DNA of 64,000 nucleotides, from positions 1-64,000 of the forward strand of contig NIVC01000881.1 in assembly GCA_002269645.1 (NCBI GenBank). The letters run 5' to 3'. A program made the position numbers and the translations under genes. Below the pieces are notes generated by a model. The model saw only the letters and a program-made list of their open reading frames with translations. It did no database searches and was not told the DNA's origin. Positions 14,347 through 62,770 of this stretch are shown here, one piece after another. Position 1 is the stretch's first letter. Each line of letters opens with the position of its first letter. Source of the DNA: Macrostomum lignano. Taxonomy: Eukaryota.

Positions 14347-14506
14347 GGCTGTCTTTGAATTTTTTTAAATAGCTTTTTTTGCACTTTTCGTTGTTAATAC
14401 TCGTAAATAGTTAAAACCCTGACGAAGGCCGCCTAGCCTAGGCCGAAATATCGGTTCCAAGAAACCTAGTCGAACTGTGTGCGTGAATTTTTCCTTTGTT
14501 TTCATA

Positions 14507-15870
<1,364 letters not shown>

Positions 15871-31900: not shown

Positions 31901-34900
31901 AAAGTAGAGAAAGTGTTTAACAAGTAAATCTACCCAAAAAGCCCATCCAGTTATTATAGTATCTATGGCTTCCATGTTCACCAGCCCGATTCTACTGGCA
32001 ACACGCGAACCTGTACGAGCTACTCTTGAATTGCTATTGGACGAAACAGTTAGCACCTGACAGCTTCTCAGCCCATAGAGACCTGAAAAGTGTGTTGCCA
32101 GTGGAACAATGTCCTTGCGATTATAAAACTTCTGCGCATGCACATTATTTAATTAGTAATCTCTATACCTTTCTGGTTATCCTGAGAATATTTGAAGCCA
32201 CAAGTGAGAAATTGATAAAGTTAATCAGCATTTAGCGTTACATCCTCTTTCTACCAGGGGTAATTGATTTCAGTTATTACAGTTTTCATATTACTGTAAC
32301 CCTATTGCTGCAGCCATCATGTGCACTGGCGGTCGCGTCTACCAGCCCTGCATGCCACCCTGCGCCAAGACCTGCCACAATGTCGGCCTGGAGCCGGAGC
32401 CCCACTGCGTCAACAGCCAGTGCATCGAGGGCTGCGCCTGCCCCAACGGCTATGTTGAGCACGACAATGAGTGCATACCCAGTGACAACTGTCCCTGCTT
32501 CTACCAGGGCAAGGAGTACCCCAAAGGTTCTGTCATTCACAATACCACCAGCTGTTCAACCTGCAGCTGCACCAAAGGCGGTGTGATGAACTGCACTAGC
32601 GACAGCTCAGTGTGCCGGCCGACTAAGCCAACTTGCACTGAGAACCAATACGCGTGCAATGTGACCGGAATGTGCATCAGCTACAGCCAGTTCTGCGACG
32701 GCACTCTGGATTGTCTGTACGGAGACGACGAGAAGAACTGCAGTAAGTAGCATGCGATTGTGTATAGCTAGCTCATTGCGAGCTGGTCTTCAACCTGGCC
32801 TATGCAGTAACTCGGATCTGGGAGGCTGGCCCAGCAACTGAGGACCTGGTAGGCCGGCGGTGACCCAGAAACTGAGGATCTGGAAGGGTAGCGATGAGAG
32901 TCATGAGAGTCTGGGAGGGCGGCGGTGGCCTGACGTTGACTCCGGGAGGGTGACCCAGTAACTGAGAATCTGGAAGGCTGGCAGCCCAACCTAAGGATCT
33001 GATAGTGAGGCGGGGCGAAAAACAAGCCAGAGCACCCGAACTCAACCCGCAGACACAACCTGCTCGCCGTCGTACTTCCGCTGCATCACAACGCAGCAGT
33101 GCGTGGCCATGTCTCTCAAATGCGACGGCATTCCTCAGTGCACGGACGGTTCGGACGAGTTAAACTGCGGTGAGACCAGACGAACTGAAGAATCCCCCAT
33201 TTGCATATTGATTTTAAAGTTTTATTACAATAATGAACCGAGAATATATTTTACGCATACTTAGGACTCGAATGCTAAACCGCATCTCATTGCAGGTTGC
33301 AATCCAACTGAGATTCAATGCAACAAAACCGGCAAATGCCTGCCAAAGCAGAAACGATGCGACGGAGTCTACGACTGTGGACTGCCCGACACGACTGACG
33401 AAAACGACTGCAAGAGTGAGAAATATTTCATGGAAATTGTTTCAAATTTGAACAACTTTTATAAAAGTCGCTAATCGACTTCATTCATAAAACTGCTTAT
33501 TTTCCACCTGGCAGAGTGCGACGAAGTGTCTGAGTTCAAATGTGGGGCAGCAGACACCACAGAAACCAAGTGCATTCCACGAGTCAACCACTGCGATGGC
33601 CACGACGACTGTGGAGACGGCAGCGACGAAATTGGCTGCAGTAAGCTCAGAAAGTCAAAATCGCAAAAACTAGCGACTTTAATTTAAACTTGGAAACTAC
33701 TCAATCTTACATTTAGAATGCCTCTGCATGGAAAAGGACACTGTTATATGCGATCAGTGCAAGTGCATCAATGTGACACAACTCTGCGACGGAAATCGCG
33801 ATTGCGAAGTGAGTAAAAAATGTTAAATTTTGTTTTAGCTGAACCTGCTCAAATATTAATAAATAAAATTGAATTAATCAAATAAAAAAACTTCTCCGCC
33901 AAACGAAATGAAGGACGGAACCGATGAACAGTCCTGCACAACAACATCTACGACAACTACAACAACTACACCGACATCTACAACAACGTCAACATCAACA
34001 TCAACATCGACAACGACAACAACACCTACAACAACAACGACCTCGACGTCGACGACCACAACTCCACCGTCTACAACAACTACGACACCATCATCAACAA
34101 CGACAACCTCAAGCTCAACAACGACCACAGCACCAACGACGACAACCTCGACGTCGACCACCACGACATCGCCGTCGACGACTACTACGCCGCCTTCGAC
34201 AACCACGACTACAGAGAACATTCTTGCAAAGAGCACCTCCTTGCCGCAGCGTTGCATTGAGGAAGACGGCATGGCGAACAATGGTCCAATTGGGTTGAGC
34301 GACATCTCTGTGAGTGCTTCCACTCAAGGTGTTGGACTCATTGCGCAAAGCGAGTTGAACCTCCTTCGTCCGTCGACGAGTGGTCTTGATGTCAACCGCG
34401 CACCTTCAGTAACCCGCAAAGATGAAAGCATTTCCTTTGACTTCAATGTCAGTGGCGACGACGGCAGTCAGTCGATTATTGGAAAGCTCAGCATCATTTC
34501 AAGCACTCCAGGATTGATTACGTCAATCCAGCTGTATGAATCGTCTGGCGTTGCTGCAACCTTCACATTAGTAAAATCTGCCAACAGTGCTGAGGACGTG
34601 GCCACGTGTAGCAATAACTTTATCGAGTGTGCCTCAATCGGCGGCCTTGGTCTACAGACAAACAGAATCAGAATCAAGTTCAACTTCATCAATACGAACA
34701 ACCTTCCGGTCAATGTTCAGGTAAGCATGCTAGGATGTTACACAAGACTTTCGACCACAACATCAACGTCGACGTCGACGTCGACGTCTACGACAACATC
34801 CACATCAACCACAACTACGCCGCCGTCGACCACAACCACTACGCCAACATCGACGACGACAGCCTCAACGTCGACTACAACAACGCCGCCGTCGACCACA

Positions 34901-37900
34901 ACTACTAAGCCGACGTCTACCACTATCACATCGTCAACAACAACAACATCGCCAACTACAACGTCTTTTTCGACATCGACAACGACAACAACGACACCAA
35001 CAACGACTTCTGCAACGACAGTCACCACACCGTGCACCGGGGACAACGTTCGCTGTCTAAATGCCGCTGGTGTCAGCATTTGTGCCCACGTATGCGATGG
35101 CATCGTTGAGTGCAGGAACGGAGAAGATGAACCTCCGTCGTGCTTGTGTAAGCTGGCAAATCATATTGTGACAGCCTCTGTCTTGTAGTAGCGGGTATGC
35201 CTTGTATCTTCTTCGTAGCCTTAGATATTCTCTTTGTCGATGATCGTAGAAGCATACCAATAGCTAGCATCGAATATAGTGGAATTCGATATGCCCGTAC
35301 GTTGTCTTTAGTTTCTGCTCAATGCATCACACTGACGAATTTCAATCATATAGGCAATCTTAGGCTGTGTCTCGTACGAGCTTATTTCTTGGCATATAGA
35401 CGATTTACTCGTACTGAGTATGTAGACAAACCCTCCATTAAGTGACTTCATTTTTGCATTTGCTGTAAAAAGTTGAGAACTTATCCGAAAACTATTTAAA
35501 CAAATTTCAAACAGCTGTCAGTCAAAGCAGCCTTCTAAAAGTTTTCCCTCTGACCTAAATAGGTTATTCAAGCTTTAGTAAAAATAGAACAACAGAATTG
35601 CCTTTAACCTTTGCGCATTGCAGCCACAACAACAACGACTACGTCGACAACTACCGGCATCGTGCGAGTTTGCGAGCCAGATGAACAGGATGGAATGGCG
35701 ACGGACTCGGTGATCAGAGACGAGGACATCAAAGTGAATCCCAGTTCGTCAGCCAAGAAGCCGAAGTCTGACCTGCGGCCAGTCTCACCAGACTACTTTG
35801 TTCTTAACACAACGGGACTGAACGCGACATTAACAATCTCGCTGACACAAAACACTAAAATCAACTCTCAGTTGACTCGGCTTGAGCTAATATCGACGGA
35901 CTTTTTCATTCCAACTGCATTTATAGTCGTTGAATTTAAAAAAGCTGAGGATTCGGACTACACACAATTGGCTAATTTGACGAGCACTAGCAGAAACTGC
36001 TTCCCGGATCTGCTGCACTGCGCTTTGCCAGCCAATTCAAATCCGTTGACGGCGCAAGAAGTTCGGCTGACGTTTTCATTCGTGCAGGAAACAACCATGT
36101 CCTTAAAGCTCTCGGTCTTTGGTTGCTTTGAAAAACTAACAACAACTCTGCCGCCAACCACAATGTACACCACAACTGAACTTGTAAAGGCAAAGACGGA
36201 GACCACGCCTCCTCGTTGCGTAGAAAAAGATGGTATGGCAGATTCGAACATAATCACCACGGAAGAAATGTACATTAGAAGCGCATCTCTCGGAGTGAAT
36301 TCGTATGCCGACCGCAGTTTAGATGATCTGAGGTTCAGCAAAGCAGGAACTGGATTCCAAATCACAGGCAATACAAATACACCAACGACAGAGTCCATTC
36401 AGCTGGATTTCTTTGTTGCAGGTGACGACGGAAGTGCCTCGATAATAGGTGCACTGCAAATTGCCCAGGTTGGACCCAAGTCACTGATAAAAAAGGTGGA
36501 GCTCAGAGCCAATTACAACAATTCATCACCCGAAGATTTGATTGTAAGCGCCACTGAAACATCAGGCATAACAGCTTGCTTTAATGACATGATCCAATGC
36601 GCGAAAATACCTGGCCAAGGACTAACGGCTACAAAAATATCCATTACGATTTCCTTTGTTAATATAATGCCTCAGCACATAAAACTACAAATACTCGGGT
36701 GCTATCAAACTATCGAAACGTCGACAACAACCACGACGTCGACTACGACAACGCCGCCGTCGACCACAACTACTACACCAACGTCGACAACAACCACAAC
36801 GCCTTCAACAACAACTACAACACCAACATCGACGACGACAACTACAACACCGACTTCGACGACGACTACTACAACACCAACTTCGACGTCGACTACGACA
36901 ACGCCGCCGTCGACCACAACTACTACACCAACGTCGACAACAACCACAACGCCTTCTACGACCACGACACCGCCGTCGACGACAACTACGACACCATCAA
37001 CTACGACCACTACACCAACAACCACGACAACGTCGACGTCGACTAGTACTACAACGCCTTCCACTACTACAGTGCCGCGTGTTTGTATTGAAATTGATGG
37101 ACTTTCGAACCCATTCATCATCTCACCATCGAATATTCAAGTAATCGGTGGAACACAGTCTGGATACACGGCTTCTGATTTAGAAAAGTTGCGCCTGTCA
37201 TCACCAGTCCCATTTAATTTGAACCGGCCAACAGCCACATCTTTTAGTAATCCAAATGAGAACATTCTAATTGAAGTGAACCCTGCAGCTGAATCGACCA
37301 GCGGAGTAGAGATTGGACGAATTGAGCTGAGGTTTACAGCCCCCGAAGTAACAGCCATTCGAGTGTACAACAAGCCGACGCTTTCTCAACCAAATTGGGA
37401 CACTTACTATTTCTCTGGCAGCAATCTCACGAACTGCAAGTCAGACCTAATGGTGTGCCTTAGTACAGTCTCTATTGTGTCGAAAATGCTTCGATTCGAG
37501 GTCTTCTACACATCTGTAACTGACAAAAACAGCATCGACCTCCAAATTGGAATATATGGATGTTTCAAGCAAGGCTCCACAACTTCACCGTCGACAACGA
37601 CCACGCCCACATCGACGACTACCACTCCAACGTCAACAACCACAACAACGCCTTCAACAACTACCACCACTCCGTCGTCAACAACAACCACAACGGCTTC
37701 AACAACTACAACACCAACTTCGACGACCACAACCTCGACGTCGACTACGACAACGCCGCCGTCGACCACAACCACTACACCAACGTCGACAACAACCACA
37801 ACGCCTTCAACAACAACTACAACACCAACATCGACGACGACAACTACAACACCTCCTTCTACAACTACGACCTCAACATCGACAACCACAACGCCAACGT

Positions 37901-40900
37901 CGACTACAACTACGCCAACGTCGACTACGACTACGCCAACGTCGACAACTACAACGCCTACATCGACGACAACAACACCTACAACAACAACGACCTCGAC
38001 GTCGACGACCACAACTCCACCGTCTACAACAACTACGACACCATCATCAACAACGACAACCTCAAGCTCAACAACGACCACAGCACCAACGACGACAACC
38101 TCGACGTCGACCACCACGACATCGCCGTCGACGACTACTACGCCGCCTTCGACAACCACGACTACAGAGAACATTCTTGCAAAGAGCACCTCCTTGCCGC
38201 AGCGTTGCATTGAGGAAGACGGCATGGCGAACAATGGTCCAATTGGGTTGAGCGACATCTCTGTGAGTGCTTCCACTCAAGGTGTTGGACTCATTGCGCA
38301 AAGCGAGTTGAACCTCCTTCGTCCGTCGACGAGTGGTCTTGATGTCAACCGCGCACCTTCAGTAACCCGCAAAGATGAAAGCATTTCCTTTGACTTCAAT
38401 GTCAGTGGCGACGACGGCAGTCAGTCGATTATCGGAAAGCTCAGCATCATTTCAAGCACTCCAGGATTGATTACGTCAATCCAGCTGTATGAATCGTCTG
38501 GTGCTGCTGCAACCTTCACATTAGTAAAATCTGCCAACAGTGCTGAGGACGTGGCCACGTGTAGCAATAACTTTATCGAGTGTGCCTCAATCGGCGGCCT
38601 TGGTCTACAGACAAACAGAATCAGAATCAAGTTCAACTTCATCAATACGAACAACCTTCCGGTCAATGTTCAGGTAAGCATGCTAGGATGTTACACAAGA
38701 CTTTCGACCACAACATCGACGTCGACGTCGACGTCAACGTCTACGACAACATCCACATCAACCACAACTACGCCGCCGTCGACCACAACCACTACGCCAA
38801 CGTCGACAACAACCACAACGCCTTCAACAACAACTACAACACCAACATCGACGACGACAACTACAACACCTCCTTCGACGACGACAACTACAACACCGAC
38901 TTCGACGACGACTACTACAACACCGACTTCGACGACGACAACTACAACACCTACTTCGACGATGACAACTACAACGCCGACTTCGACGACGACTACTACT
39001 ACACCTACTTCGACGACCACAACCTCGACGTCGACTACGACAACGCCGCCGTCGACCACAACTACTACACCAACGTCGACAACAACCACAACGCCTTCTA
39101 CGACCACGACACCGCCGTCGACGACAACTACGACACCATTAACTACGACCACTACACCAACAACCACGACAACGTCGACGTCGACTAGTACTACAACGCC
39201 TTCCACTACTACAGTGCCGCGTGTTTGCATTGAAATTGATGGACTTTCGAACCCATTCATCATCTCACCATCGAATATTCAAGTAATCGGTGGAACACAG
39301 TCTGGATACACGGCTTCTGATTTAGAAAAGTTGCGCCTGTCATCACCAGTCCCATTTAATTTGAACCGGCCAACAGCCACATCTTTTAGTAATCCAAATG
39401 AGAACATTCTAATTGAAGTGAACCCTGCAGCTGAATCGACCAGCGGAGTAGAGATTGGACGAATTGAGCTGAGGTTTACAGCCCCCGAAGTAACAGCCGT
39501 TCGAGTGTACAACAAGCCGACGCTTTCTCAACCAAATTGGGACACTTACTATTTCTCTGGCAGCAATCTCACGAACTGCAAGTCAGACCTAATGGTGTGC
39601 CTTAGTACAGTCTCTATTGTGTCGAAAATGCTTCGATTCGAGGTCTTCTACACATCTGTAACTGACAAAAACAGCATCGACCTCCAAATTGGAATATATG
39701 GATGTTTCAAGCAAGGCTCCACAACTTCACCGTCGACAACGACCACGCCCACATCGACGACTACCACTCCAACGTCAACAACCACAACAACGCCTTCAAC
39801 AACTACCACCACTCCGTCGTCAACAACAACCACAACGGCTTCAACAACTACAACACCAACTTCGACGACCACAACCTCGACGTCGACTACGACAACGCCG
39901 CCGTCGACCACAACCACTACACCAACGTCGACAACAACCACAACGCCTTCAACAACAACTACAACACCAACATCGACGACGACAACTACAACACCTCCTT
40001 CTACAACTACGACCTCAACATCGACAACCACAACGCCAACGTCGACTACAACTACGCCAACGTCGACTACGACTACGCCAACGTCGACAACTACAACGCC
40101 TACATCGACGACAACAACACCTACAACAACAACGACCTCGACGTCGACGACCACAACTCCACCGTCTACAACAACTACGACACCATCATCAACAACGACA
40201 ACCTCAAGCTCAACAACGACCACAGCACCAACGACGACAACCTCGACGTCGACCACCACGACATCGCCGTCGACGACTACTACGCCGCCTTCGACAACCA
40301 CGACTACAGAGAACATTCTTGCAAAGAGCACCTCCTTGCCGCAGCGTTGCATTGAGGAAGACGGCATGGCGAACAATGGTCCAATTGGGTTGAGCGACAT
40401 CTCTGTGAGTGCTTCCACTCAAGGTGTTGGACTCATTGCGCAAAGCGAGTTGAACCTCCTTCGTCCGTCGACGAGTGGTCTTGATGTCAACCGCGAACCT
40501 TCAGTAACCCGCAAAGATGAAAGCATTTCCTTTGACTTCAATGTCAGTGGCGACGACGGCAGTCAGTCGATTATCGGAAAGCTCAGCATCATTTCAAGCA
40601 CTCCAGGATTGATTACGTCAATCCAGCTGTATGAATCGTCTGGTGCTGCTGCAACCTTCACATTAGTAAAATCTGCCAACAGTGCTGAGGACGTGGCCAC
40701 GTGTAGCAATAACTTTATCGAGTGTGCCTCAATCGGCGGCCTTGGTCTACAGACAAACAGAATCAGAATCAAGTTCAACTTCATCAATACGAACAACCTT
40801 CCGGTCAATGTTCAGGTAAGCATGCTAGGATGTTACACAAGACTTTCGACCACAACATCAACGTCGACGTCGACGTCAACGTCTACGACAACATCCACAT

Positions 40901-43900
40901 CAACCACAACTACGCCGCCGTCGACCACAACCACTACGCCAACGTCGACAACAACCACAACGCCTTCAACAACAACTACAACACCAACATCGACGACGAC
41001 AACTACAACACCTCCTTCGACGACGACAACTACAACACCGACTTCGACGACGACTACTACAACACCGACTTCGACGACGACAACTACAACACCTACTTCG
41101 ACGATGACAACTACAACGCCGACTTCGACGACGACTACTACTACACCTACTTCGACGACCACAACCTCGACGTCGACTACGACAACGCCGCCGTCGACCA
41201 CAACTACTACACCAACGTCGACAACAACCACAACGCCTTCTACGACCACGACACCGCCGTCGACGACAACTACGACACCATTAACTACGACCACTACACC
41301 AACAACCACGACAACGTCGACGTCGACTAGTACTACAACGCCTTCCACTACTACAGTGCCGCGTGTTTGCATTGAAATTGATGGACTTTCGAACCCATTC
41401 ATCATCTCACCATCGAATATTCAAGTAATCGGTGGAACACAGTCTGGATACACGGCTTCTGATTTAGAAAAGTTGCGCCTGTCATCACCAGTCCCATTTA
41501 ATTTGAACCGGCCAACAGCCACATCTTTTAGTAATCCAAATGAGAACATTCTAATTGAAGTGAACCCTGCAGCTGAATCGACCAGCGGAGTAGAGATTGG
41601 ACGAATTGAGCTGAGGTTTACAGCCCCCGAAGTAACAGCCGTTCGAGTGTACAACAAGCCGACGCTTTCTCAACCAAATTGGGACACTTACTATTTCTCT
41701 GGCAGCAATCTCACGAACTGCAAGTCAGACCTAATGGTGTGCCTTAGTACAGTCTCTATTGTGTCGAAAATGCTTCGATTCGAGGTCTTCTACACATCTG
41801 TAACTGACAAAAACAGCATCGACCTCCAAATTGGAATATATGGATGTTTCAAGCAAGGCTCCACAACTTCACCGTCGACAACGACCACGCCCACATCGAC
41901 GACTACCACTCCAACGTCAACAACCACAACAACGCCTTCAACAACTACCACCACTCCGTCGTCAACAACAACCACAACGGCTTCAACAACTACAACACCA
42001 ACTTCGACGACCACAACCTCGACGTCGACTACGACAACGCCGCCGTCGACCACAACCACTACACCAACGTCGACAACAACCACAACGCCTTCAACAACAA
42101 CTACAACACCAACATCGACGACGACAACTACAACACCTCCTTCTACAACTACGACCTCAACATCGACAACCACAACGCCAACGTCGACTACAACTACGCC
42201 AACGTCGACTACGACTACGCCAACGTCGACAACTACAACGCCTACATCGACGACAACAACACCTACAACAACAACGACCTCGACGTCGACGACCACAACT
42301 CCACCGTCTACAACAACTACGACACCATCATCAACAACGACAACCTCAAGCTCAACAACGACCACAGCACCAACGACGACAACCTCGACGTCGACCACCA
42401 CGACATCGCCGTCGACGACTACTACGCCGCCTTCGACAACCACGACTACAGAGAACATTCTTGCAAGAGCACCTCCTTGCCGCAGCGTTGCATTGAGGAA
42501 GACGGCATGGCGAACAATGGTCCAATTGGGTTGAGCGACATCTCTGTGAGTGCTTCCACTCAAGGTGTTGGACTCATTGCGCAAAGCGAGTTGAACCTCC
42601 TTCGTCCGTCGACGAGTGGTCTTGATGTCAACCGCGCACCTTCAGTAACCCGCAAAGATGAAAGCATTTCCTTTGACTTCAATGTCAGTGGCGACGACGG
42701 CAGTCAGTCGATTATCGGAAAGCTCAGCATCATTTCAAGCACTCCAGGATTGATTACGTCAATCCAGCTGTATGAATCGTCTGGTGCTGCTGCAACCTTC
42801 ACATTAGTAAAATCTGCCAACAGTGCTGAGGACGTGGCCACGTGTAGCAATAACTTTATCGAGTGTGCCTCAATCGGCGGACTTGGTCTACAGACAAACA
42901 GAATCAGAATCAAGTTCAACTTCATCAATACGAACAACCTTCCGGTCAATGTTCAGGTAAGCATGCTAGGATGTTACACAAGACTTTCGACCACAACATC
43001 GACGTCGACGTCGACGTCAACGTCTACGACAACATCCACATCAACCACAACTACGCCGCCGTCGACCACAACCACTACGCCAACGTCGACAACAACCACA
43101 ACGCCTTCAACAACAACTACAACACCAACATCGACGACGACAACTACAACACCTCCTTCGACGACGACAACTACAACACCGACTTCGACGACGACTACTA
43201 CAACACCGACTTCGACGACGACAACTACAACACCTACTTCGACGATGACAACTACAACGCCGACTTCGACGACGACTACTACTACACCTACTTCGACGAC
43301 GACTACTACAACACCAACTTCGACGTCGACTACGACAACGCCGCCGTCGACCACAACTACTACACCAACGTCGACAACAACCACAACGCCTTCTACGACC
43401 ACGACACCGCCGTCGACGACAACTACGACACCATTAACTACGACCACTACACCAACAACCACGACAACGTCGACGTCGACTAGTACTACAACGCCTTCCA
43501 CTACTACAGTGCCGCGTGTTTGTATTGAAATTGATGGACTTTCGAACCCATTCATCATCTCACCATCGAATATTCAAGTAATCGGTGGAACACAGTCTGG
43601 ATACACGGCTTCTGATTTAGAAAAGTTGCGCCTGTCATCACCAGTCCCATTTAATTTGAACCGGCCAACAGCCACATCTTTTAGTAATCCAAATGAGAAC
43701 ATTCTAATTGAAGTGAACCCTGCAGCTGAATCGACCAGCGGAGTAGAGATTGGACGAATTGAGCTGAGGTTTACAGCCCCCGAAGTAACAGCCGTTCGAG
43801 TGTACAACAAGCCGACGCTTTCTCAACCAAATTGGGACACTTACTATTTCTCTGGCAGCAATCTCACGAACTGCAAGTCAGACCTAATGGTGTGCCTTAG

Positions 43901-46900
43901 TACAGTCTCTATTGTGTCGAAAATGCTTCGATTCGAGGTCTTCTACACATCTGTAACTGACAAAAACAGCATCGACCTCCAAATTGGAATATATGGATGT
44001 TTCAAGCAAGGCTCCACAACTTCACCGTCGACAACGACCACGCCCACATCGACGACTACCACTCCAACGTCAACAACCACAACAACGCCTTCAACAACTA
44101 CCACCACTCCGTCGTCAACAACAACCACAACGGCTTCAACAACTACAACACCAACTTCGACGACCACAACCTCGACGTCGACTACGACAACGCCGCCGTC
44201 GACCACAACCACTACACCAACGTCGACAACAACCACAACGCCTTCAACAACAACTACAACACCAACATCGACGACGACAACTACAACACCTCCTTCTACA
44301 ACTACGACCTCAACATCGACAACCACAACGCCAACGTCGACTACAACTACGCCAACGTCGACTACGACTACGCCAACGTCGACAACTACAACGCCTACAT
44401 CGACGACGACAACTACAACACCTCCGTCTACAACTACGACCTCAACATCGACAACCACAACGCCAACGTCGACTACAACTACGCCAACGTCGACTACGAC
44501 TACGCCAACGTCGACAACTACAACGCCTACATCGACGACAACAACACCTACAACAACAACGACCTCGACGTCGACGACCACAACTCCACCGTCTACAACA
44601 ACTACGACACCATCATCAACAACGACAACCTCAAGCTCAACAACGACCACAGCACCAACGACGACAACCTCGACGTCGACCACCACGACATCGCCGTCGA
44701 CGACTACTACGCCGCCTTCGACAACCACGACTACAGAGAACATTCTTGCAAAGAGCACCTCCTTGCCGCAGCGTTGCATTGAGGAAGACGGCATGGCGAA
44801 CAATGGTCCAATTGGGTTGAGCGACATCTCTGTGAGTGCTTCCACTCAAGGTGTTGGACTCATTGCGCAAAGCGAGTTGAACCTCCTTCGTCCGTCGACG
44901 AGTGGTCTTGATGTCAACCGCGCACCTTCAGTAACCCGCAAAGATGAAAGCATTTCCTTTGACTTCAATGTCAGTGGCGACGACGGCAGTCAGTCGATTA
45001 TCGGAAAGCTCAGCATCATTTCAAGCACTCCAGGATTGATTACGTCAATCCAGCTGTATGAATCGTCTGGTGCTGCTGCAACCTTCACATTAGTAAAATC
45101 TGCCAACAGTGCTGAGGACGTGGCCACGTGTAGCAATAACTTTATCGAGTGTGCCTCAATCGGCGGCCTTGGTCTACAGACAAACAGAATCAGAATCAAG
45201 TTCAACTTCATCAATACGAACAACCTTCCGGTCAATGTTCAGGTAAGCATGCTAGGATGTTACACAAGACTTTCGACCACAACATCGACGTCGACGTCGA
45301 CGTCAACGTCTACGACAACATCCACATCAACCACAACTACGCCGCCGTCGACCACAACCACTACGCCAACGTCGACAACAACCACAACGCCTTCAACAAC
45401 AACTACAACACCAACATCGACGACGACAACTACAACACCTCCTTCGACGACGACAACTACAACACCGACTTCGACGACGACTACTACAACACCGACTTCG
45501 ACGACGACAACTACAACACCTACTTCGACGATGACAACTACAACGCCGACGTCGACTACGACAACGCCGCCGTCGACCACAACTACTACACCAACGTCGA
45601 CAACAACCACAACGCCTTCAACAACAACTACAACACCAACATCGACGACGACAGCTACAACACCTCCTTCTACAACTACGTCCTCAACATCGACAGCCAC
45701 AACGCCAACGTCGAATACAACTACCAGGCCAACGTCGACTACAACATTCTCACCAACGTCGAGTACAACTACGCCAACGACGACTAAAACTACGCCAACG
45801 ACGACTATAACAACATCGCCAACGTCAACATCCACCACAACTCCGTCGTCTACAACAACTGCAACACCATCATTAACGACCACGACAACAACACCAACAA
45901 CGACCACAACAACGGCTTCTACGACTACCACAACACCTACCTCTACTACTGCGACTCAAACATCTACGTCTACGAATACCACTACGACTCCAGCAACGAC
46001 GTTGACGGCATCAACTTCGACAACCACGCTGTTGTCAACCACAACTACTGCACCAACATCAACGGCTACGACTTCGTCGTCGACTACCACTACTCAACCA
46101 TCGACAACATCTACAAATACTCCTAGCAGCGTGTGTCTAGAAACAGATTTTATGTCCGACAATAATATTATATCTTTGACTGATATGTCTGTCAGCAACT
46201 ATTCCATTGGAGCTTCGATTCCACAATCGGATTTAAATTCGCTACGACCAAATGAAAGTGGGCTTGTTGTAAGTCAGTTGGCGTCAGATTCGCCTAAAAC
46301 AGAAACGATACAATTTAACTTTGATGTCTCTGAGGATGGGGGAATCCCATCAACGATAGGAAAGCTACAGACTATAGCGAATGTTCCTGTTTTAATCACA
46401 TCCATGCAGTTTCTTTCTAAAGCTGACTTCAGTGCCCCTCTTTCTTTGGTAAAAAAGACAACAACTTCTGCTGAGACGCTTACATGTCTTGAAGATTTGA
46501 TAGCATGTGCTTCTATCAGCGGTCGAGGACTAAACGCTGTTTCTATTTCCGTATTTTACGAGTTTACTAATTTACCTGACCTAAAATTGTCGATAAAACT
46601 AAATATTTTGGGTTGTTACACAACCAAGACCACGGAAAAAATCACAACGACAACAGTTACATCGACGTCAACCACCACTAAACCATTGTCAACGACAACT
46701 ACAACACCTACTTCGACGACCACAACCTCGACGTCGACTACGACAACGCCGCCGTCGACCACAACTACTACACCAACGTCGACAACAACCACAACGCCTT
46801 CAACAACAACTACAACACCAACATCGACGACGACAACTACAACACCTCCTTCGACGACGACAACTACAACACCGACTTCGACGACGACTACTACAGCACC

Positions 46901-49900
46901 TACTTCGACGACGACAACTACAACACCGACTTCGACGACGACAACTACAACACCTACTTCGACGATGACAACTACAACGCCGACTTCGACAACAACCACA
47001 ACCTCGACGTCGACTACGACAACGCCGCCGTCGACCACAACTACTACACCAACGTCGACAACAACCACAACGCCTTCAACAACAACTACAACACCAACAT
47101 CGATGACGACAACTACAACACCGACTTCGACGACGACTACTACAACACCAACTTCGACGTCGACTACGACAACGCCGCCGTCGACCACAACTACTACACC
47201 AACGTCGACAACAACCACAACGCCTTCTACGACCACGACACCGCCGTCGACGACAACTACGACACCATCAACTACGACCACTACACCAACAACCACGACA
47301 ACGTCGACGTCGACTAGTACTACAACGCCTTCCACTACTACAGTGCCGCGTGTTTGTATTGAAATTGATGGACTTTCGAACCCATTCATCATCTCACCAT
47401 CGAATATTCAAGTAATCGGTGGAACACAGTCTGGATACACGGCTTCTGATTTAGAAAAGTTGCGCCTGTCATCACCAGTCCCATTTAATTTGAACCGGCC
47501 AACAGCCACATCTTTTAGTAATCCAAATGAGAACATTCTAATTGAAGTGAACCCTGCAGCTGAATCGACCAGCGGAGTAGAGATTGGACGAATTGAGCTG
47601 AGGTTTACAGCCCCCGAAGTAACAGCCATTCGAGTGTACAACAAGCCGACGCTTTCTCAACCAAATTGGGACACTTACTATTTCTCTGGCAGCAATCTCA
47701 CGAACTGCAAGTCAGACCTAATGGTGTGCCTTAGTACAGTCTCTATTGTGTCGAAAATGCTTCGATTCGAGGTCTTCTACACATCTGTAACTGACAAAAA
47801 CAGCATCGACCTCCAAATTGGAATATATGGATGTTTCAAGCAAGGCTCCACAACTTCACCGTCGACAACGACCACGCCCACATCGACGACTACCACTCCA
47901 ACGTCAACAACCACAACAACGCCTTCAACAACTACCACCACTCCGTCGTCAACAACAACCACAACGGCTTCAACAACTACAACACCAACTTCGACGACCA
48001 CAACCTCGACGTCGACTACGACAACGCCGCCGTCGACCACAACCACTACACCAACGTCGACAACAACCACAACGCCTTCAACAACAACTACAACACCAAC
48101 ATCGACGACGACAACTACAACACCTCCTTCTACAACTACGACCTCAACATCGACAACCACAACGCCAACGTCGACTACAACTACGCCAACGTCGACTACG
48201 ACTACGCCAACGTCGACAACTACAACGCCTACATCGACGACGACAACTACAACACCTCCGTCTACAACTACGACCTCAACATCGACAACCACAACGCCAA
48301 CGTCGACTACAACTACGCCAACGTCGACTACGACTACGCCAACGTCGACAACTACAACGCCTACATCGACGACAACAACACCTACAACAACAACGACCTC
48401 GACGTCGACGACCACAACTCCACCGTCTACAACAACTACGACACCATCATCAACAACGACAACCTCAAGCTCAACAACGACCACAGCACCAACGACGACA
48501 ACCTCGACGTCGACCACCACGACATCGCCGTCGACGACTACTACGCCGCCTTCGACAACCACGACTACAGAGAACATTCTTGCAAAGAGCACCTCCTTGC
48601 CGCAGCGTTGCATTGAGGAAGACGGCATGGCGAACAATGGTCCAATTGGGTTGAGCGACATCTCTGTGAGTGCTTCCACTCAAGGTGTTGGACTCATTGC
48701 GCAAAGCGAGTTGAACCTCCTTCGTCCGTCGACGAGTGGTCTTGATGTCAACCGCGCACCTTCAGTAACCCGCAAAGATGAAAGCATTTCCTTTGACTTC
48801 AATGTCAGTGGCGACGACGGCAGTCAGTCGATTATCGGAAAGCTCAGCATCATTTCAAGCACTCCAGGATTGATTACGTCAATCCAGCTGTATGAATCGT
48901 CTGGTGCTGCTGCAACCTTCACATTAGTAAAATCTGCCAACAGTGCTGAGGACGTGGCCACGTGTAGCAATAACTTTATCGAGTGTGCCTCAATCGGCGG
49001 CCTTGGTCTACAGACAAACAGAATCAGAATCAAGTTCAACTTCATCAATACGAACAACCTTCCGGTCAATGTTCAGGTAAGCATGCTAGGATGTTACACA
49101 AGACTTTCGACCACAACATCAACGTCGACGTCGACGTCGACGTCTACGACAACATCCACATCAACCACAACTACGCCGCCGTCGACCACAACCACTACGC
49201 CAACGTCGACAACAACCACAACGCCTTCAACAACAACTACAACACCAACATCGACGACGACAACTACAACACCTCCTTCGACGACGACAACTACAACACC
49301 GACTTCGACGACGACTACTACAACACCGACTTCGACGACGACAACTACAACACCTACTTCGACGACGACTACTACAACACCTACTTCGACAACAACCACA
49401 ACCTCGACGTCGACTACGACAACGCCGCCGTCGACCACAACTACTACACCAACGTCGACAACAACCACAACGCCTTCAACAACAACTACAACACCAACAT
49501 CGACGACGACAACTACAACACCTACTTCGACGACGACAACTACAACACCTCCTTCGACGACGACAACTACAACACCGACTTCGACGACGACTACTACAAC
49601 ACCAACTTCGACTTCGACTACGACAACGCCGCCGTCGACCACAACTACTACACCAACGTCGACAACAACCACAACGCCTTCTACGACCACGACACCGCCG
49701 TCGACGACAACTACGACACCATCAACTACGACCACTACACCAACAACCACGACAACGTCGACGTCGACTAGTACTACAACGCCTTCCACTACTACAGTGC
49801 CGCGTGTTTGTATTGAAATTGATGGACTTTCGAACCCATTCATCATCTCACCATCGAATATTCAAGTAATCGGTGGAACACAGTCTGGATACACGGCTTC

Positions 49901-52900
49901 TGATTTAGAAAAGTTGCGCCTGTCATCACCAGTCCCATTTAATTTGAACCGGCCAACAGCCACATCTTTTAGTAATCCAAATGAGAACATTCTAATTGAA
50001 GTGAACCCTGCAGCTGAATCGACCAGCGGAGTAGAGATTGGACGAATTGAGCTGAGGTTTACAGCCCCGAAGTAACAGCCGTTCGAGTGTACAACAAGCC
50101 GACGCTTTCTCAACCAAATTGGGACACTTACTATTTCTCTGGCAGCAATCTCACGAACTGCAAGTCAGACCTAATGGTGTGCCTTAGTACAGTCTCTATT
50201 GTGTCGAAAATGCTTCGATTCGAGGTCTTCTACACATCTGTAACTGACAAAAACAGCATCGACCTCCAAATTGGAATATATGGATGTTTCAAGCAAGGCT
50301 CCACAACTTCACCGTCGACAACGACCACGCCCACATCGACGACTACCACTCCAACGTCAACAACCACAACAACGCCTTCAACAACTACCACCACTCCGTC
50401 GTCAACAACAACCACAACGGCTTCAACAACTACAACACCAACTTCGACGACCACAACCTCGACGTCGACTACGACAACGCCGCCGTCGACCACAACCACT
50501 ACACCAACGTCGACAACAACCACAACGCCTTCAACAACAACTACAACACCAACATCGACGACGACAACTACAACACCTCCTTCTACAACTACGACCTCAA
50601 CATCGACAACCACAACGCCAACGTCGACTACAACTACGCCAACGTCGACTACGACTACGCCAACGTCGACAACTACAACGCCTACATCGACGACGACAAC
50701 TACAACACCTCCGTCTACAACTACGACCTCAACATCGACAACCACAACGCCAACGTCGACTACAACTACGCCAACGTCGACTACGACTACGCCAACGTCG
50801 ACAACTACAACGCCTACATCGACGACAACAACACCTACAACAACAACGACCTCGACGTCGACGACCACAACTCCACCGTCTACAACAACTACGACACCAT
50901 CATCAACAACGACAACCTCAAGCTCAACAACGACCACAGCACCAACGACGACAACCTCGACGTCGACCACCACGACATCGCCGTCGACGACTACTACGCC
51001 GCCTTCGACAACCACGACTACAGAGAACATTCTTGCAAAGAGCACCTCCTTGCCGCAGCGTTGCATTGAGGAAGACGGCATGGCGAACAATGGTCCAATT
51101 GGGTTGAGCGACATCTCTGTGAGTGCTTCCACTCAAGGTGTTGGACTCATTGCGCAAAGCGAGTTGAACCTCCTTCGTCCGTCGACGAGTGGTCTTGATG
51201 TCAACCGCGCACCTTCAGTAACCCGCAAAGATGAAAGCATTTCCTTTGACTTCAATGTCAGTGGCGACGACGGCAGTCAGTCGATTATCGGAAAGCTCAG
51301 CATCATTTCAAGCACTCCAGGATTGATTACGTCAATCCAGCTGTATGAATCGTCTGGTGCTGCTGCAACCTTCACATTAGTAAAATCTGCCAACAGTGCT
51401 GAGGACGTGGCCACGTGTAGCAATAACTTTATCGAGTGTGCCTCAATCGGCGGCCTTGGTCTACAGACAAACAGAATCAGAATCAAGTTCAACTTCATCA
51501 ATACGAACAACCTTCCGGTCAATGTTCAGGTAAGCATGCTAGGATGTTACACAAGACTTTCGACCACAACATCAACGTCGACGTCGACGTCGACGTCTAC
51601 GACAACATCCACATCAACCACAACTACGCCGCCGTCGACCACAACTACTACGCCAACGTCGACAACAACCACAACGCCTTCAACAACAACTACAACACCA
51701 ACATCGACGACCACAACTACAACACCGACTTCGACGACGACAACTACAACACCGACTTCGACGACGACTACTACAACACCGACTTCGACGACGACAACTA
51801 CAACACCTACTTCGACGACGACTACTACAACACCTACTTCGACAACAACCACAACCTCGACGTCGACTACGACAACGCCGCCGTCGACCACAACTACTAC
51901 ACCAACGTCGACAACAACCACAACGCCTTCAACAACAACTACAACACCAACATCGACGACGACAACTACAACACCTACTTCGACGACGACAACTACAACA
52001 CCTCCGTCTACAACTACGACCTCAACATCGACAACCACAACGCCAACGTCGACTACAACTACGCCAACGTCGACTACGACTACGCCAACGTCGACAACTA
52101 CAACGCCTACATCGACGACAACAACACCTACAACAACAACGACCTCGACGTCGACGACCACAACTCCACCGTCTACAACAACTACGACACCATCATCAAC
52201 AACGACAACCTCAAGCTCAACAACGACCACAGCACCAACGACGACAACCTCGACGTCGACCACCACGACATCGCCGTCGACGACTACTACGCCGCCTTCG
52301 ACAACCACGACTACAGAGAACATTCTTGCAAAGAGCACCTCCTTGCCGCAGCGTTGCATTGAGGAAGACGGCATGGCGAACAATGGTCCAATTGGGTTGA
52401 GCGACATCTCTGTGAGTGCTTCCACTCAAGGTGTTGGACTCATTGCGCAAAGCGAGTTGAACCTCCTTCGTCCGTCGACGAGTGGTCTTGATGTCAACCG
52501 CGCACCTTCAGTAACCCGCAAAGATGAAAGCATTTCCTTTGACTTCAATGTCAGTGGCGACGACGGCAGTCAGTCGATTATCGGAAAGCTCAGCATCATT
52601 TCAAGCACTCCAGGATTGATTACGTCAATCCAGCTGTATGAATCGTCTGGTGCTGCTGCAACCTTCACATTAGTAAAATCTGCCAACAGTGCTGAGGACG
52701 TGGCCACGTGTAGCAATAACTTTATCGAGTGTGCCTCAATCGGCGGCCTTGGTCTACAGACAAACAGAATCAGAATCAAGTTCAACTTCATCAATACGAA
52801 CAACCTTCCGGTCAATGTTCAGGTAAGCATGCTAGGATGTTACACAAGACTTTCGACCACAACATCAACGTCGACGTCGACGTCGACGTCTACGACAACA

Positions 52901-55900
52901 TCCACATCAACCACAACTACGCCGCCGTCGACCACAACCACTACGCCAACGTCGACAACAACCACAACGCCTTCAACAACAACTACAACACCAACATCGA
53001 CGACCACAACTACAACACCGACTTCGACGACGACAACTACAACACCGACTTCGACGACGACAACTACAACACCGACTTCGACGACGACAACTACAACACC
53101 TACTTCGACGACGACTACTACAACACCTACTTCGACAACAACCACAACCTCGACGTCGACTACGACAACGCCGCCGTCGACCACAACTACTACACCAACG
53201 TCGACAACAACCACAACGCCTTCAACAACAACTACAACACCAACATCGACGACGACAACTACAACACCTACTTCGACGACGACTACTACAACACCTACTT
53301 CGACAACAACCACAACCTCGACGTCGACTACGACAACGCCGCCGTCGACCACAACTACTACACCAACGTCGACAACAACCACAACGCCTTCAACAACAAC
53401 TACAACACCAACATCGACGACGACAACTACAACACCTACTTCGACGACGACAACTACAACACCTCCTTCGACGACGACAACTACAACACCGACTTCGACG
53501 ACGACTACTACAACACCAACTTCGACGTCGACTACGACAACGCCGCCGTCGACCACAACTACTACACCAACGTCGACAACAACCACAACGCCTTCTACGA
53601 CCACGACACCGCCGTCGACGACAACTACGACACCATCAACTACGACCACTACACCAACAACCACGACAACGTCGACGTCGACTAGTACTACAACGCCTTC
53701 CACTACTACAGTGCCGCGTGTTTGTATTGAAATTGATGGACTTTCGAACCCATTCATCATCTCACCATCGAATATTCAAGTAATCGGTGGAACACAGTCT
53801 GGATACACGGCTTCTGATTTAGAAAAGTTGCGCCTGTCATCACCAGTCCCATTTAATTTGAACCGGCCAACAGCCACATCTTTTAGTAATCCAAATGAGA
53901 ACATTCTAATTGAAGTGAACCCTGCAGCTGAATCGACCAGCGGAGTAGAGATTGGACGAATTGAGCTGAGGTTTACAGCCCCCGAAGTAACAGCCGTTCG
54001 AGTGTACAACAAGCCGACGCTTTCTCAACCAAATTGGGACACTTACTATTTCTCTGGCAGCAATCTCACGAACTGCAAGTCAGACCTAATGGTGTGCCTT
54101 AGTACAGTCTCTATTGTGTCGAAAATGCTTCGATTCGAGGTCTTCTACACATCTGTAACTGACAAAAACAGCATCGACCTCCAAATTGGAATATATGGAT
54201 GTTTCAAGCAAGGCTCCACAACTTCACCGGCGACAACGACCACGCCCACATCGACGACTACCACTCCAACGTCAACAACCACAACAACGCCTTCAACAAC
54301 TACCACCACTCCGTCGTCAACAACAACCACAACGGCTTCAACAACTACAACACCAACTTCGACGACAGCTACTACAACACCAACTTCGACGACCACAACC
54401 TCGACGTCGACTACGACAACGCCGCCGTCGACCACAACCACTACACCAACGTCGACAACAACCACAACGCCTTCAACAACAACTACAACACCAACATCGA
54501 CGACGACAACTACAACACCTCCTTCTACAACTACGACCTCAACATCGACAACCACAACGCCAACGTCGACTACAACTACGCCAACGTCGACTACGACTAC
54601 GCCAACGTCGACAACTACAACACCTCCTTCTACAACTACGACCTCAACATCGACAACCACAACGCCAACGTCGACTACAACTACGCCAACGTCGACTACG
54701 ACTACGCCAACGTCGACAACTACAACGCCTACATCGACGACAACAACACCTACAACAACAACGACCTCGACGTCGACGACCACAACTCCACCGTCTACAA
54801 CAACTACGACACCATCATCAACAACGACAACCTCAAGCTCAACAACGACCACAGCACCAACGACGACAACCTCGACGTCGACCACCACGACATCGCCGTC
54901 GACGACTACTACGCCGCCTTCGACAACCACGACTACAGAGAACATTCTTGCAAAGAGCACCTCCTTGCCGCAGCGTTGCATTGAGGAAGACGGCATGGCG
55001 AACAATGGTCCAATTGGGTTGAGCGACATCTCTGTAAGTGCTTCCACTCAAGGTGTTGGACTCATTGCGCAAAGCGAGTTGAACCTCCTTCGTCCGTCGA
55101 CGAGTGGTCTTGATGTCAACCGCGCACCTTCAGTAACCCGCAAAGATGAAAGCATTTCCTTTGACTTCAATGTCAGTGGCGACGACGGCAGTCAGTCGAT
55201 TATCGGAAAGCTCAGCATCATTTCAAGCACTCCAGGATTGATTACGTCAATCCAGCTGTATGAATCGTCTGGTGCTGCTGCAACCTTCACATTAGTAAAA
55301 TCTGCCAACAGTGCTGAGGACGTGGCCACGTGTAGCAATAACTTTATCGAGTGTGCCTCAATCGGCGGCCTTGGTCTACAGACAAACAGAATCAGAATCA
55401 AGTTCAACTTCATCAATACGAACAACCTTCCGGTCAATGTTCAGGTAAGCATGCTAGGATGTTACACAAGACTTTCGACCACAACATCAACGTCGACGTC
55501 GACGTCGACGTCTACGACAACATCCACATCAACCACAACTACGCCGCCGTCGACCACAACCACTACGCCAACGTCGACAACAACCACAACTCCTTCAACA
55601 ACAACTACAACACCAACATCGACGACCACAACTACAACACCGACTTCGACGACGACAACTACAACACCGACTTCGACGACGACAACTACAACACCGACTT
55701 CGACGACGACAACTACAACACCTACTTCGACGACGACAACTACAACACCGACTTCGACGATGACAACTACAACACCGACTTCGACGACGACTACTACAAC
55801 GCCGACTTCGACAACGACTACTACAACACCAACTTCGACGACCACAACCTCGACGTCGCCTACGACAACGCCGCCGTCGACCACAACGACTACACCAACG

Positions 55901-58900: not shown

Positions 58901-59760
58901 GGCTCTGGATACGCCTCTGACCCTGTGACCAACAGCCAGTGGACACTGAACCCTGGACAGAGAGCCATTATTAGACACTGAACCCTGGACAGAGAGCCAT
59001 TAATAGACACTGAACCCTGGACAGAGAGCCATTAATAGACACTGAACCCTGGACAGACAGCCATTAATAGACACTGAACCCTGGACAGAGAGCCATTAAT
59101 AGACACTGAACCCTGGACAGAGAGCCATTATTAGACACTGAACCCTGGACAGAGAGCCATTATTAGACACTGAACTCTGGACAGAGAGCCATTATTAGAC
59201 ACTGAACTCTGGACAGAGAGCCATTATTAGACACTGAACTCTGGACCCGACCTCCCCTCAGATCCATCGCAACCCCAGCTGCCAACGGCGGTGCCGAGTG
59301 CGTCGGGCCGACCAGCCGCGTCACCGACTGCTTCGGCGACGAGGGTGCCTGCTGCAACCCCAATGACGCGTACGTGGACACCGGCCGATGCGAGACCACC
59401 TGCGCCCAGCTGCTGAACCCGGAGCTCGCGCAGCCGCAGTCTAACTGCCAGCCGGGTTGCCAGTGCAAGCCGGGCATGGCCAGGAACGCCAACGGCAGCT
59501 GCGTCAGCATCCAGGACTGCTTCGCCTGCCAGGTGAGCGGCGGGCGGCGGCGGTTGTGGGCTAACTAGCTAACTAGCTAACTAACTAACTAACTAACTGA
59601 CTAACTAACTAACTAACTAACTAGCTAACTGACTAACTGACTAACTAACTAACTAACAAGCTAACTAACTAACTAACTAACTGACTAACTAACTAACAAG
59701 CTAACTAACTAAATAACTAACCTAGCTAAATAGCTAAATAGCTAAATAGCTAACTAGATG

Positions 59761-59791
<31 letters not shown>

Positions 59792-59812
59792 GACTAACTA
59801 ACTAACTAACTG

Positions 59813-59843
<31 letters not shown>

Positions 59844-59888
59844 GACTAACTAACTAACTGACTAACTAACTAACTAACTAACTAACTG

Positions 59889-59923
<35 letters not shown>

Positions 59924-59952
59924 GACTAACTAACTAACTAACTAACTAACTG

Positions 59953-60007
<55 letters not shown>

Positions 60008-60100
60008 GACTAACTAACTAACTAACTGACTAACTAACTAACTAACTAACTAACTGACTAACTAACTAACTGACTAACTAACTAACTAACTAACTAACTG

Positions 60101-60135
<35 letters not shown>

Positions 60136-60164
60136 GACTAACTAACTAACTAACTAACTAACTG

Positions 60165-60215
<51 letters not shown>

Positions 60216-60252
60216 GACTAACTGACTAACTAACTAACTAACTAACTAACTG

Positions 60253-60303
<51 letters not shown>

Positions 60304-61959: not shown

Positions 61960-62770
61960 GAGATGGGACGGCAGGGGGGAGGTCAGAAGGGATGAAATGG
62001 GAGGTCAGAGGGGGGTAGGTCAGAGAGAAGGTCAAATAGGGGAGGTCAGAGGGGAAAGGTCAGAGGGGAGGGGTCAGAGAGGAGAGGTCAGAGAGGATAG
62101 GTCAGAGAAGAGAGGTCAGAGAGGGGAGATCAGAAAGGGAAGGTCACAGGGGAGGTCACAGAGGAGAGGACAGAGAGGTCAGAGAGGAGAGGACAAAGAG
62201 AGGTCAGAGGAGAGGACAAAGAGAGGTCAGAGAGGGGAGGTCAGAGGGGAGAGGACAAAGAGAGGTCAGAGAGGGGAGGTAAGAGAGGAGAGGACAAAGA
62301 GAGGTCAGAGGGAGGTCAGAGGAGAAGACAAAGAGAGGTCAGAGAGGGGAGGTCAGAGGAGAGGACAGAGAGGTCAGAGAGGAGAGGTCAGAGAGGAGAG
62401 GGCAAAGAGAGGTCAGAGGAGAGGACAGAGAGGTCAGAGAGGGGAGGTCAGAGAGGAGAGGGCAAAGAGAGGTCAGAGAGGGGAGGTCAGAGGAGAGGAC
62501 AGAGAGGTCAGAGAGGGGAGGACAAAGAGAGGTCAGAGAGAGGTCAGAGGAGAGGACAAAGAGAGGTCAGAGAGGGGGGGTCAGAGGAGAGGACAGAGAG
62601 GTCAGAGAGGAGAGGACAAAGAGAGGTCAGAGAAGGGAGGTCAGAGAGGAGAGGACAAAGAGAGGTCAGAGAAGGGAGGTCAGAGAGGAGAGGACAAAGA
62701 GAGGTCAGAGAAGGGAGGTCAGAGAGGAGAGGACAAAGAGAGGTCAGAGGAGAGGACAGAGAGGTCAGAA
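61960..62770. repeat. Purine-rich degenerate satellite built on GAGGTCAGA / GAGGACAAAGA
   Basis: Strong strand-asymmetric G/A tract downstream of the giant gene's stop codon. Confidence 0.92.

Follow-up and report, generated by a model that had tools for sequence, protein, structure and literature searches.

The subject of this analysis is the central part of a large multi-exon gene of the free-living flatworm Macrostomum lignano, located on the + strand of contig NIVC01000881.1 (assembly GCA_002269645.1) within a stretch of 64,000 nucleotides (nt; positions 1 to 64,000), referred to below as the window. Judged by its domain content, the gene encodes a SCO-spondin-like gel-forming mucin, and its long regions rich in proline, threonine and serine (PTS regions) are interrupted by 19 small, cysteine-framed islands. 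These islands probably represent a lineage-specific, strongly diverged and amplified jelly-roll domain of the F5/8C (discoidin) type.

An initial annotation of the window had described 19 islands of five sequence types, nine of type A, seven of type B and one each of types C, D and E. Translation from all 19 start positions reproduced every one of them on the + strand, with exactly matching coordinates. Counted from the first to the last Cys, the type A islands comprise 162 amino acids (aa) and the type B islands 160 aa, while the single-copy islands C, D and E comprise 152, 162 and 161 aa, respectively.

The first A copy was located at 34253-34738; it differs from the other A copies by 3-4 nt, carries an SSGVAATF variant and is represented by a peptide in mass spectrometry (MS) data. 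The remaining eight, assigned by translation and comparison of copies, lie at 38206-38691, 40348-40833, 42489-42974, 44775-45260, 48609-49094, 51062-51547, 52355-52840 and 54977-55462. Six of the B copies were assigned in the same way, at 37084-37563, 39226-39705, 41368-41847, 43521-44000, 47355-47834 and 53723-54202; a further one, the sixth in order (49809-50287), is broken by a 1-nt deletion at about 50065 and was recognized by translation and comparison with its sister copies. Islands C (35671-36126), D (36217-36702) and E (46134-46616) were identified by translation, with one MS peptide for C and two each for D and E.

All islands begin with C-x-E-x-D-G/F-M/L and end with [LVI]-x-[LVI]-x-G-C-[YF], and a C-x6-C pair is present inside every one of them, as the annotation had it. 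This pattern is far beyond chance. Types A, D and E, which had been described as mutually alignable, indeed aligned well, with identities to type A of 42% for E and 36% for D; types B and C could also be aligned with A, at 23% each. Over their whole length the five types share 10 invariant columns, all four Cys among these.

In composition, the islands differ sharply from their surroundings, with a Ser/Thr/Pro content of 21-27% compared to 61-70% in the central PTS open reading frames (ORFs). They are acidic, with isoelectric points (pI) of 4.3-4.8, and contain 0-1 Trp each, the only Trp being that of type B, so that the usual conserved Trp residues of discoidin domains are lacking, as had been noted. 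The PTS spacers between islands measure 127-294 aa, the gap between C and D being only 30 aa.

Differences among copies were minimal, amounting to 0-4 of 486 nt among the A islands and 0-2 of 480 nt among the B islands. For all comparisons below, the 19 copies count as five independent sequences and not as 19 data points.

The islands are translated in vivo. In the supplementary MS tables of Wunderer et al. 2019 (PMC6410801), Dataset S2 of which derives from adhesive footprints on glass, each of the types A-E was represented by peptides, the one of type C being LSVFGCFEK. VWD and LDLa peptides of the same gene were also found, together with repeat peptides of a paralogue described below. The footprint samples also hold tubulin and yolk proteins, and a source within the adhesive itself is not implied by presence in them.

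Structures were predicted with AlphaFold2 on an alignment of the five types, and types A and B were modelled. The type A model reached a predicted local distance difference test (pLDDT) score of 87.7 and a predicted template-modelling score (pTM) of 0.85; the corresponding values for type B were 82.0 and 0.82. The predicted structure is an eight-stranded distorted jelly-roll of the galactose-binding-domain-like (GBD-like) kind, about 150-160 residues long, which fits an F5/8C domain.

When the models were compared with the PDB by Foldseek, the best match of type A was the discoidin domain of CASPR2 (E 6.6e-4, template-modelling (TM) score 0.54-0.58), followed by CBM32, APC10, neuropilin b1b2 and factor V. 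For type B, the matches were factor V (3e-5), the factor VIII C2 'discobody' (5e-5), CBM32 and neuropilin-2 (TM 0.57). The top matches had a probability of 1.00; essentially all matches belonged to the GBD-like superfamily and most of the best to PF00754.

This comparison had been named in the initial annotation as a check of its proposal that the islands are divergent discoidin beta-sandwiches, and for both modelled types F5/8C domains came out on top. Neither of the outcomes named beforehand as contrary, an unrelated fold or disorder on the one hand and a strong match to another family on the other, was obtained. The proposal was thus borne out in part: the predicted fold of A and B agrees with it, while family membership by sequence was not established. 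On the evidence of these models, it is highly probable that the islands have a discoidin-type fold.

Sequence comparisons were performed with a family of seven sequences, namely the five types of the window and two islands of the paralogue. Aligned by hhalign with an F5/8C alignment, this family yielded an E-value of 0.045 and a score of 17.96. Shuffling of columns gave scores of 9.99 +/- 2.01, and 1 of 300 shuffles reached 17.96; for the five-sequence profile against the same F5/8C alignment, the score was reached by 10 of 300 shuffles. Local mode was used, the global mode giving a meaningless 2-column alignment.

The resulting alignment was collinear from end to end, pairing C-x2-DGM with C-x2-LGM, SAS with ASS, ESISFDF with EWLQVDF, RIRI with YLRI and V-x-MLGC with MEVLGC. 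The terminal Cys pair, which the annotation had pointed out, was invariant at matching positions in all seven family sequences.

Several observations weigh against the assignment to F5/8C. None of the five types matched any family in a Pfam-A hmmscan at E<=10, in line with the earlier expectation that the domain lies below the Pfam detection threshold, and a phmmer search of PDB sequences gave no match for the islands. The family hidden Markov model (HMM), run with --max against factor VIII C2 and the F5/8C domain of SCO-spondin, scored about 0-2 bits.

The PROSITE patterns FA58C_1 (PS01285; G-W...Q-G) and FA58C_2 (PS01286; P-x8-10-[LM]-R-x-[GE]-x2-G-C) failed on 7 of 7 island sequences, and the same patterns matched both positive controls, factor VIII C2 and a bird SCO-spondin F5/8C domain. 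Over the hhalign runs, E-values ranged from 0.045 to 0.14 with negligible reported probability, and the F5/8C comparison alignment consisted of three sequences only, a search for further SCO-spondin F5/8C sequences having returned no more than five fragments. On sequence criteria, membership in the F5/8C family cannot be claimed.

The structural evidence has its own weak points. At TM scores of 0.5-0.58, the resemblance is one of fold class and not a close one, and APC10/DOC and other GBD-like families scored almost as high as discoidin domains. The models of A and B are not independent, both being derived from one shallow five-sequence alignment, and the lower-ranked AlphaFold2 models had pLDDT values of 63-76.

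Taken to the extreme, such points would mean that the fold is an artefact of AlphaFold on a shallow alignment and that the islands form a Cys-stapled beta domain that is both unrelated and novel. The alignment of only five sequences, the pLDDT of 63-72 in three of the five type A models and root-mean-square deviations of 5-8 Å from the matched structures all fit this explanation. It is nevertheless considered very improbable in view of the pTM values of 0.82-0.85, the number and order of strands, which were consistent in both models, and the hundreds of matches falling into one superfamily with no scatter over folds.

The fold could also be correct and its origin different, the islands being a GBD-like jelly-roll that arose as an offshoot of another GBD-like family or as a convergent domain in the same place. 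Foldseek E-values for APC10/DOC1, CBM, IFT25, laminin/netrin LN and MAM-type domains lay within 1-2 orders of magnitude of the best matches, and the sequence evidence for F5/8C is marginal. Against such an origin, a metazoan discoidin domain was the top match of both models, and the collinear motif alignment beat 299 of 300 shuffles. The pairing of an N-terminal with a C-terminal Cys, moreover, is a hallmark of metazoan F5/8C domains and is not general in the GBD-like superfamily. The position of the islands in the protein, which corresponds to that of the F5/8C domain in SCO-spondin, also speaks against it, and a non-F5/8C origin is judged improbable. Descent from F5/8C was retained as the most likely history of the islands, with reasonable confidence.

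The positional argument rests on the first A island, which lies in an exon separate from the remaining islands. Its surroundings follow the order LDLa, PTS, island, PTS and LDLa-like module; a bird SCO-spondin fragment (P0010) shows an LDLa cluster followed by a Pro/Thr linker, a confirmed F5/8C domain and LDLa. The first A island sits where vertebrate SCO-spondin has its F5/8C domain, and this constitutes independent positional support for F5/8C descent.

Resemblance to the SCO-spondin F5/8C domain (FA58C, PF00754) extends to a length of about 150-160 aa, to Cys as first and last residue, to the predicted jelly-roll and to a location after three VWD-C8-TIL units and the LDLa cluster, with another LDLa module following. 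The architecture of the whole protein is also alike, with TSP1/TIL repeats and a C-terminal knot, the latter only probable in the flatworm protein. In contrast, the islands lack an HMM or PROSITE match, have lost the conserved Trp and Arg positions, carry in the window gene the extra C-x6-C pair and occur in 19 copies instead of one. They are furthermore embedded in PTS, whereas the bird fragment has only a short Pro/Thr-rich linker.

Among invertebrates, gel-forming mucin-like proteins were reported to cluster nearest to the SCO-spondins, and those of lophotrochozoans and arthropods were noted to be characterized by an F5_F8_type_C domain behind the third VWD-C8-TIL unit (Lang et al. 2016, PMC4948705); the main text of that paper mentions no flatworms. 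In proteins of the hemolectin/hemocytin type and in lophotrochozoan mucin-like proteins, F5/8C-type domains directly follow the third VWD-C8-TIL unit, sometimes beside small PTS regions or CysD domains, and phylogenetically these proteins are closest to the SCO-spondins (PMC4948705). Their F5/8C domains differ from the islands in being canonical, detectable by Pfam and few in number, and the proteins carry two more VWD units downstream, where the window gene has TSP1/TIL repeats. Since canonical F5/8C domains in invertebrate mucins had already been described (PMC4948705), the novelty of the islands is lowered to that extent.

The CysD domain (Mucin2_WxxW, PF13330) of MUC2, MUC5AC and MUC5B resembles the islands in its mode of working only, both being small Cys-containing globules that interrupt long PTS regions. 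A CysD domain measures about 110 aa and has 10 Cys and a WxxW motif, in contrast to the 4 Cys (2 in the paralogue), the 0-1 Trp and the different predicted fold of the islands. Homology to CysD was rejected on the basis of the Cys and Trp counts and the absence of a Pfam match.

Related islands were found in a second gene of M. lignano. A paralogue with 51% identity (P0003, BOX15_Mlig009912g1) is encoded on contig NIVC01001187.1 of the same assembly, at a locus designated L001, and extends past the annotated end of its gene model, downstream of the VWD/TIL/LDLa exons (L001:21889-28130). A long ORF in this extension holds one 150-aa island (CDERQGM...AIKGCF) and, after it, at least eight near-identical tandem units of 219 aa, each consisting of a 153-aa island (CEEMDAMQ...LEVHGCF) and a 66-aa Pro/Thr-rich linker; the array runs into an assembly gap (a run of N).

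The HMM of the window islands scored 29.5 bits (full length) and 12 bits against the paralogue islands. These islands retain the terminal Cys pair and have no C-x6-C. The extra loop, which the annotation had listed as a feature of the domain, therefore applies to the islands of the window and not to the family as a whole, and is specific to the window gene.

In an annelid, Paralvinella palmiformis, one protein (P0008) likewise contains non-PTS islands of the C...C kind between PTS stretches, at residues of about 1000-1572 and after its LDLa modules. By eye, these start with C-x-E and end with I-x-I/V-x-x-C, and the N-terminal half of the protein has VWD-C8-TIL and LDLa as in the window gene. 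The three Paralvinella islands gave no relevant Pfam match and no signal with the flatworm family HMM.

A word-indexed search with type A, covering 5.8 billion proteins, returned nothing, and a profile search of 1.84 billion representative proteins with the five types returned a single match (E 3e-81). This match, P0001 (UniRef A0A1I8GJ02, 'VWFD domain-containing protein' of M. lignano), is a fragmentary model of this locus or of a homeologous one. No description of the protein was found in the literature on locus tag Mlig011629 or on Macrostomum mucins.

What is new about the islands is, first, a divergence that makes the family an orphan to all sequence methods; second, the added loop, putatively closed by a disulfide, and the amplification into an array interspersed with PTS; and third, their presence in two flatworm genes with products in secreted material. 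A structural identity is thereby proposed for about 3,000 residues which are blank in every sequence database, within a PTS and island section of about 7,000 aa of predicted protein. The islands would represent a second, non-CysD way of punctuating mucin bottle-brushes with small disulfide-closed globules, and would extend the link between F5/8C and invertebrate SCO-spondin-like mucins to the Platyhelminthes, in an extreme, amplified and degenerate form.

When considering the number of islands, the near-identity of the copies means that the array is very young, has been homogenized or is partly a product of assembly. The copy number rests on one assembly, and two 1-nt deletions in homopolymers, each shifting the frame, were noted within the array. 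At about 42465 (42463-42467), AAA is reduced to AA in comparison with the sister repeat at 40323, in an A-run that precedes the A copy at 42489 by 24 nt. At about 50065 (50063-50067), CCCCC is reduced to CCCC within the B copy that starts at 49809. It is because of these two deletions that the array falls into three ORFs; both are likely consensus errors of long-read sequencing, although they could be real.

It is conceivable on these grounds that the 19 copies and their order are partly products of long-read assembly, with the true number of units being higher or lower. Copies only 0-4 nt apart, homopolymer deletions of a type typical of long-read consensus errors and public gene models of the locus that are fragmentary and mis-spliced would all be expected in that case. 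However, the spacer lengths vary in a structured way, with 178/214 aa in the early array and 238-294 aa later, and the array is anchored by the unique types C, D and E, so this explanation was considered unlikely.

The following origin and mode of action are proposed for the discoidin-type islands. An F5/8C domain behind the LDLa cluster, as in SCO-spondin-like invertebrate mucins, would have been duplicated together with flanking PTS, and recent tandem amplification would have produced the array of 19 copies and five types. The protein would be a secreted, polymer-forming glycoprotein composed of a signal peptide, three VWD-C8-TIL units, LDLa modules, PTS with islands, TSP1/TIL/VWC modules and a cystine knot.

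Within it, each island would form a compact acidic globule poor in O-glycosylation. By analogy with metazoan discoidin domains, from which the disulfide is inferred, the first and last Cys would be linked at one pole of the barrel. The island could then act as a pendant knob on the bottle-brush backbone with its variable loops pointing away, and 19 such knobs may together bind, multivalently and with low affinity, to glycans, to surfaces or to further mucin chains. This would amount to a cross-linking or adhesion role, like that of CysD in MUC2/MUC5, in the secreted mucus or trail of the worm. A binding or cross-linking role of the islands is put forward tentatively, on the strength of this analogy.

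With the same fold, the islands might instead be passive, serving as non-glycosylated, disulfide-stapled spacers that bind no ligand and form no cross-links. They would then act in setting the length of PTS segments, in folding, export from the endoplasmic reticulum or granule packing, or in limiting proteolysis. Such a role would explain why the aromatic residues through which F5/8C domains typically contact their ligands are missing, with no Trp in types A, C, D and E, why the types are poorly conserved, their 10 invariant columns being mostly structural (Cys, Gly, Pro, hydrophobic), and why near-identical copies show no sign of diversifying binding specificities.

It agrees less well with the persistence of five divergent types, and of a paralogue family, in the form of intact folded domains that have not decayed into PTS. 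Discoidin domains elsewhere are, in addition, almost always binding modules. The presence of the protein in footprint material on glass points in the same direction, weakly, as tubulin and yolk proteins occur there too. A purely passive role, in any of these forms, is regarded as somewhat doubtful.

A known M. lignano protein with which the window gene shares several features is Mlig-ap2, the surface-binding adhesive protein described by Wunderer et al. 2019 (PMC6410801). Its N-terminal part contains VWD/C8/TIL and LDLa and its C-terminal part TIL and TSP1, its center is a huge repeat array of 21 x 255 aa and 25 x 221 aa (PMC6410801), and it is present in the same footprint proteomes as the product of the window gene. 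The repeats of Mlig-ap2 are basic (pI about 10), whereas the islands of the window are acidic.

Identity of the window gene with Mlig-ap2 was rejected, as the antibody epitopes TSRKSTGRTTRQKK and VNRETPKEPKKALS are absent in all six frames of the window, the repeat sizes of Mlig-ap2 (255/221 aa) differ and a separate MS entry, Mlig-AP2_3, exists. The paralogue was likewise rejected as Mlig-ap2 although its period of 219 aa is near 221; the epitopes are absent and the MS peptides and entries are separate.

Because the module forms the 219-aa unit of the paralogue and similar C...C islands occur in the Paralvinella protein, the orphan discoidin-like module may be envisaged as the unit from which the giant secreted glycoproteins of macrostomids, and perhaps of other lophotrochozoans, are generally built. 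As part of this idea, the 221- and 255-aa repeats of Mlig-ap2, which make up three-quarters of that protein, could be the same domain plus a linker. The idea is speculative and its probability is considered low; if true, flatworms would bind to the substrate in temporary adhesion by means of a degenerate discoidin domain. As both the window protein and its paralogue occur in footprints and Mlig-ap2 is similar outside the repeats, the domain is a candidate, open to testing, for a unit that binds or cross-links in the mucus or glue of flatworms; the species is a model organism for reversible bioadhesion.

The architecture of the host gene was determined from tblastn alignments of P0001 and P0002, two M. 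lignano gene models, to the window, with exons 96-100% identical, and from Pfam matches on both sides of the island array. The approximate span of the gene is 16722-61415 (+). The first coding exon (16722-16859) corresponds to residues 1-46 of P0002 and has, by eye, a signal-peptide-like N-terminus.

It is followed at 21149-32744 by the exons of the VWD-C8-TIL part, with three VWD regions and minisatellite-filled introns between them; the three N-terminal VWD-C8-TIL units were supported by Pfam matches to VWD, C8 and TIL on the window exons and on P0001/P0002. About five LDL-receptor class A modules lie at 32703-33940, as seen in the translations and in Ldl_recept_a matches on P0001 and on 32316-32750. 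The last module of this cluster is split by an intron and ends with ...DGTDEQSC at the start of the next exon.

That exon, translated as one ORF (33908-35188), holds the LDLa end, PTS, the first A island, PTS and an LDLa-like module (CTGDNVRC..., 35033-35143). The module matched Pfam Ldl_recept_a with E 3.7e-4 and 21.1 bits, the gathering score of 24.1 not being reached. The central region of PTS and islands comprises the three ORFs noted above (35611-56458); it is probably one continuous exon of about 20.8 kb, of which the last ~60 nt probably run into the next intron.

Downstream, Pfam matches revealed C-terminal exons with at least six TSP1 repeats, TIL domains and a VWC-like module (56436-59565), and a probable C-terminal cystine-knot exon was located at 61152-61415 by a weak Pfam DAN match (E 0.05) and by its Cys pattern as judged by eye. 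The combination regarded as the hallmark of SCO-spondin (per Lang 2016) was present, namely the LDLa cluster together with TSP1_spondin/TSP_1 in at least six copies, TIL and VWC, and so was that of mucins, the long PTS regions.

Homologues of the N-terminal half included M. lignano proteins with 98% and 51% identity, the Paralvinella VWD/LDLa protein, a 'SCO-spondin-like' protein of the crinoid Anneissia, vertebrate mucins and the bird SCO-spondin fragment P0010 (34% identity, E 4e-108). Near the N-terminus, the stretch 17426-18372 (+) has an EMI-type appearance such as that at the start of SCO-spondin (...GWCIV...C...CC-x-G-Y-x-G-x-x-C), followed by EGF. Pfam reported weak EGF-type matches on the last exon of this stretch only, and no EMI.

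As a practical warning, the public gene models of the locus splice out or frame-shift the PTS and islands. P0001 is wrong in the repeat region (window 33808-36126, PTS), where the PTS preceding the first A island is spliced out as an intron and the end of that island is dropped; PTS DNA is also read in the wrong frame, giving ...NNHDNVDVD... tails. The P0002 model ends after the third TIL domain.

Coding and non-coding repeats in the window give rise to numerous misleading reading frames. Within 35611-56458, the ACN-rich coding of the PTS keeps the other frames and the opposite strand open for 200-340 codons, resulting in dozens of artefactual ORFs with a high content of N/D/Y/H or R/Q/L. Many introns of the mucin gene are filled with minisatellites whose units measure 8-32 bp (most often 21 bp) and number 10-94 copies; these yield many spurious long ORFs on both strands. 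They were located at 19940-21029, 23224-23617, 24221-24748, 25302-25814 and 27689-28716, and further ones at 58942-59246, 59561-60310 and 60712-61213.

The upstream neighbour is a DHHC palmitoyltransferase gene (6002-8684, +), with Pfam DHHC in three exons and minisatellites of 19, 21 and 23 bp in its introns (6299-6860, 7132-8389 and 8698-9357). Just upstream of the first mucin exon lie a (CTGT)n microsatellite (14101-14354) and a (TATC)n microsatellite of 1.37 kb (14505-15870), which account for a block of low GC content and strongly skewed composition. Downstream of the mucin gene, a GA-rich, degenerate tandem array of 14-bp units (62001-62764), probably non-coding, is open in three frames with Glu/Arg/Gly-rich translations.

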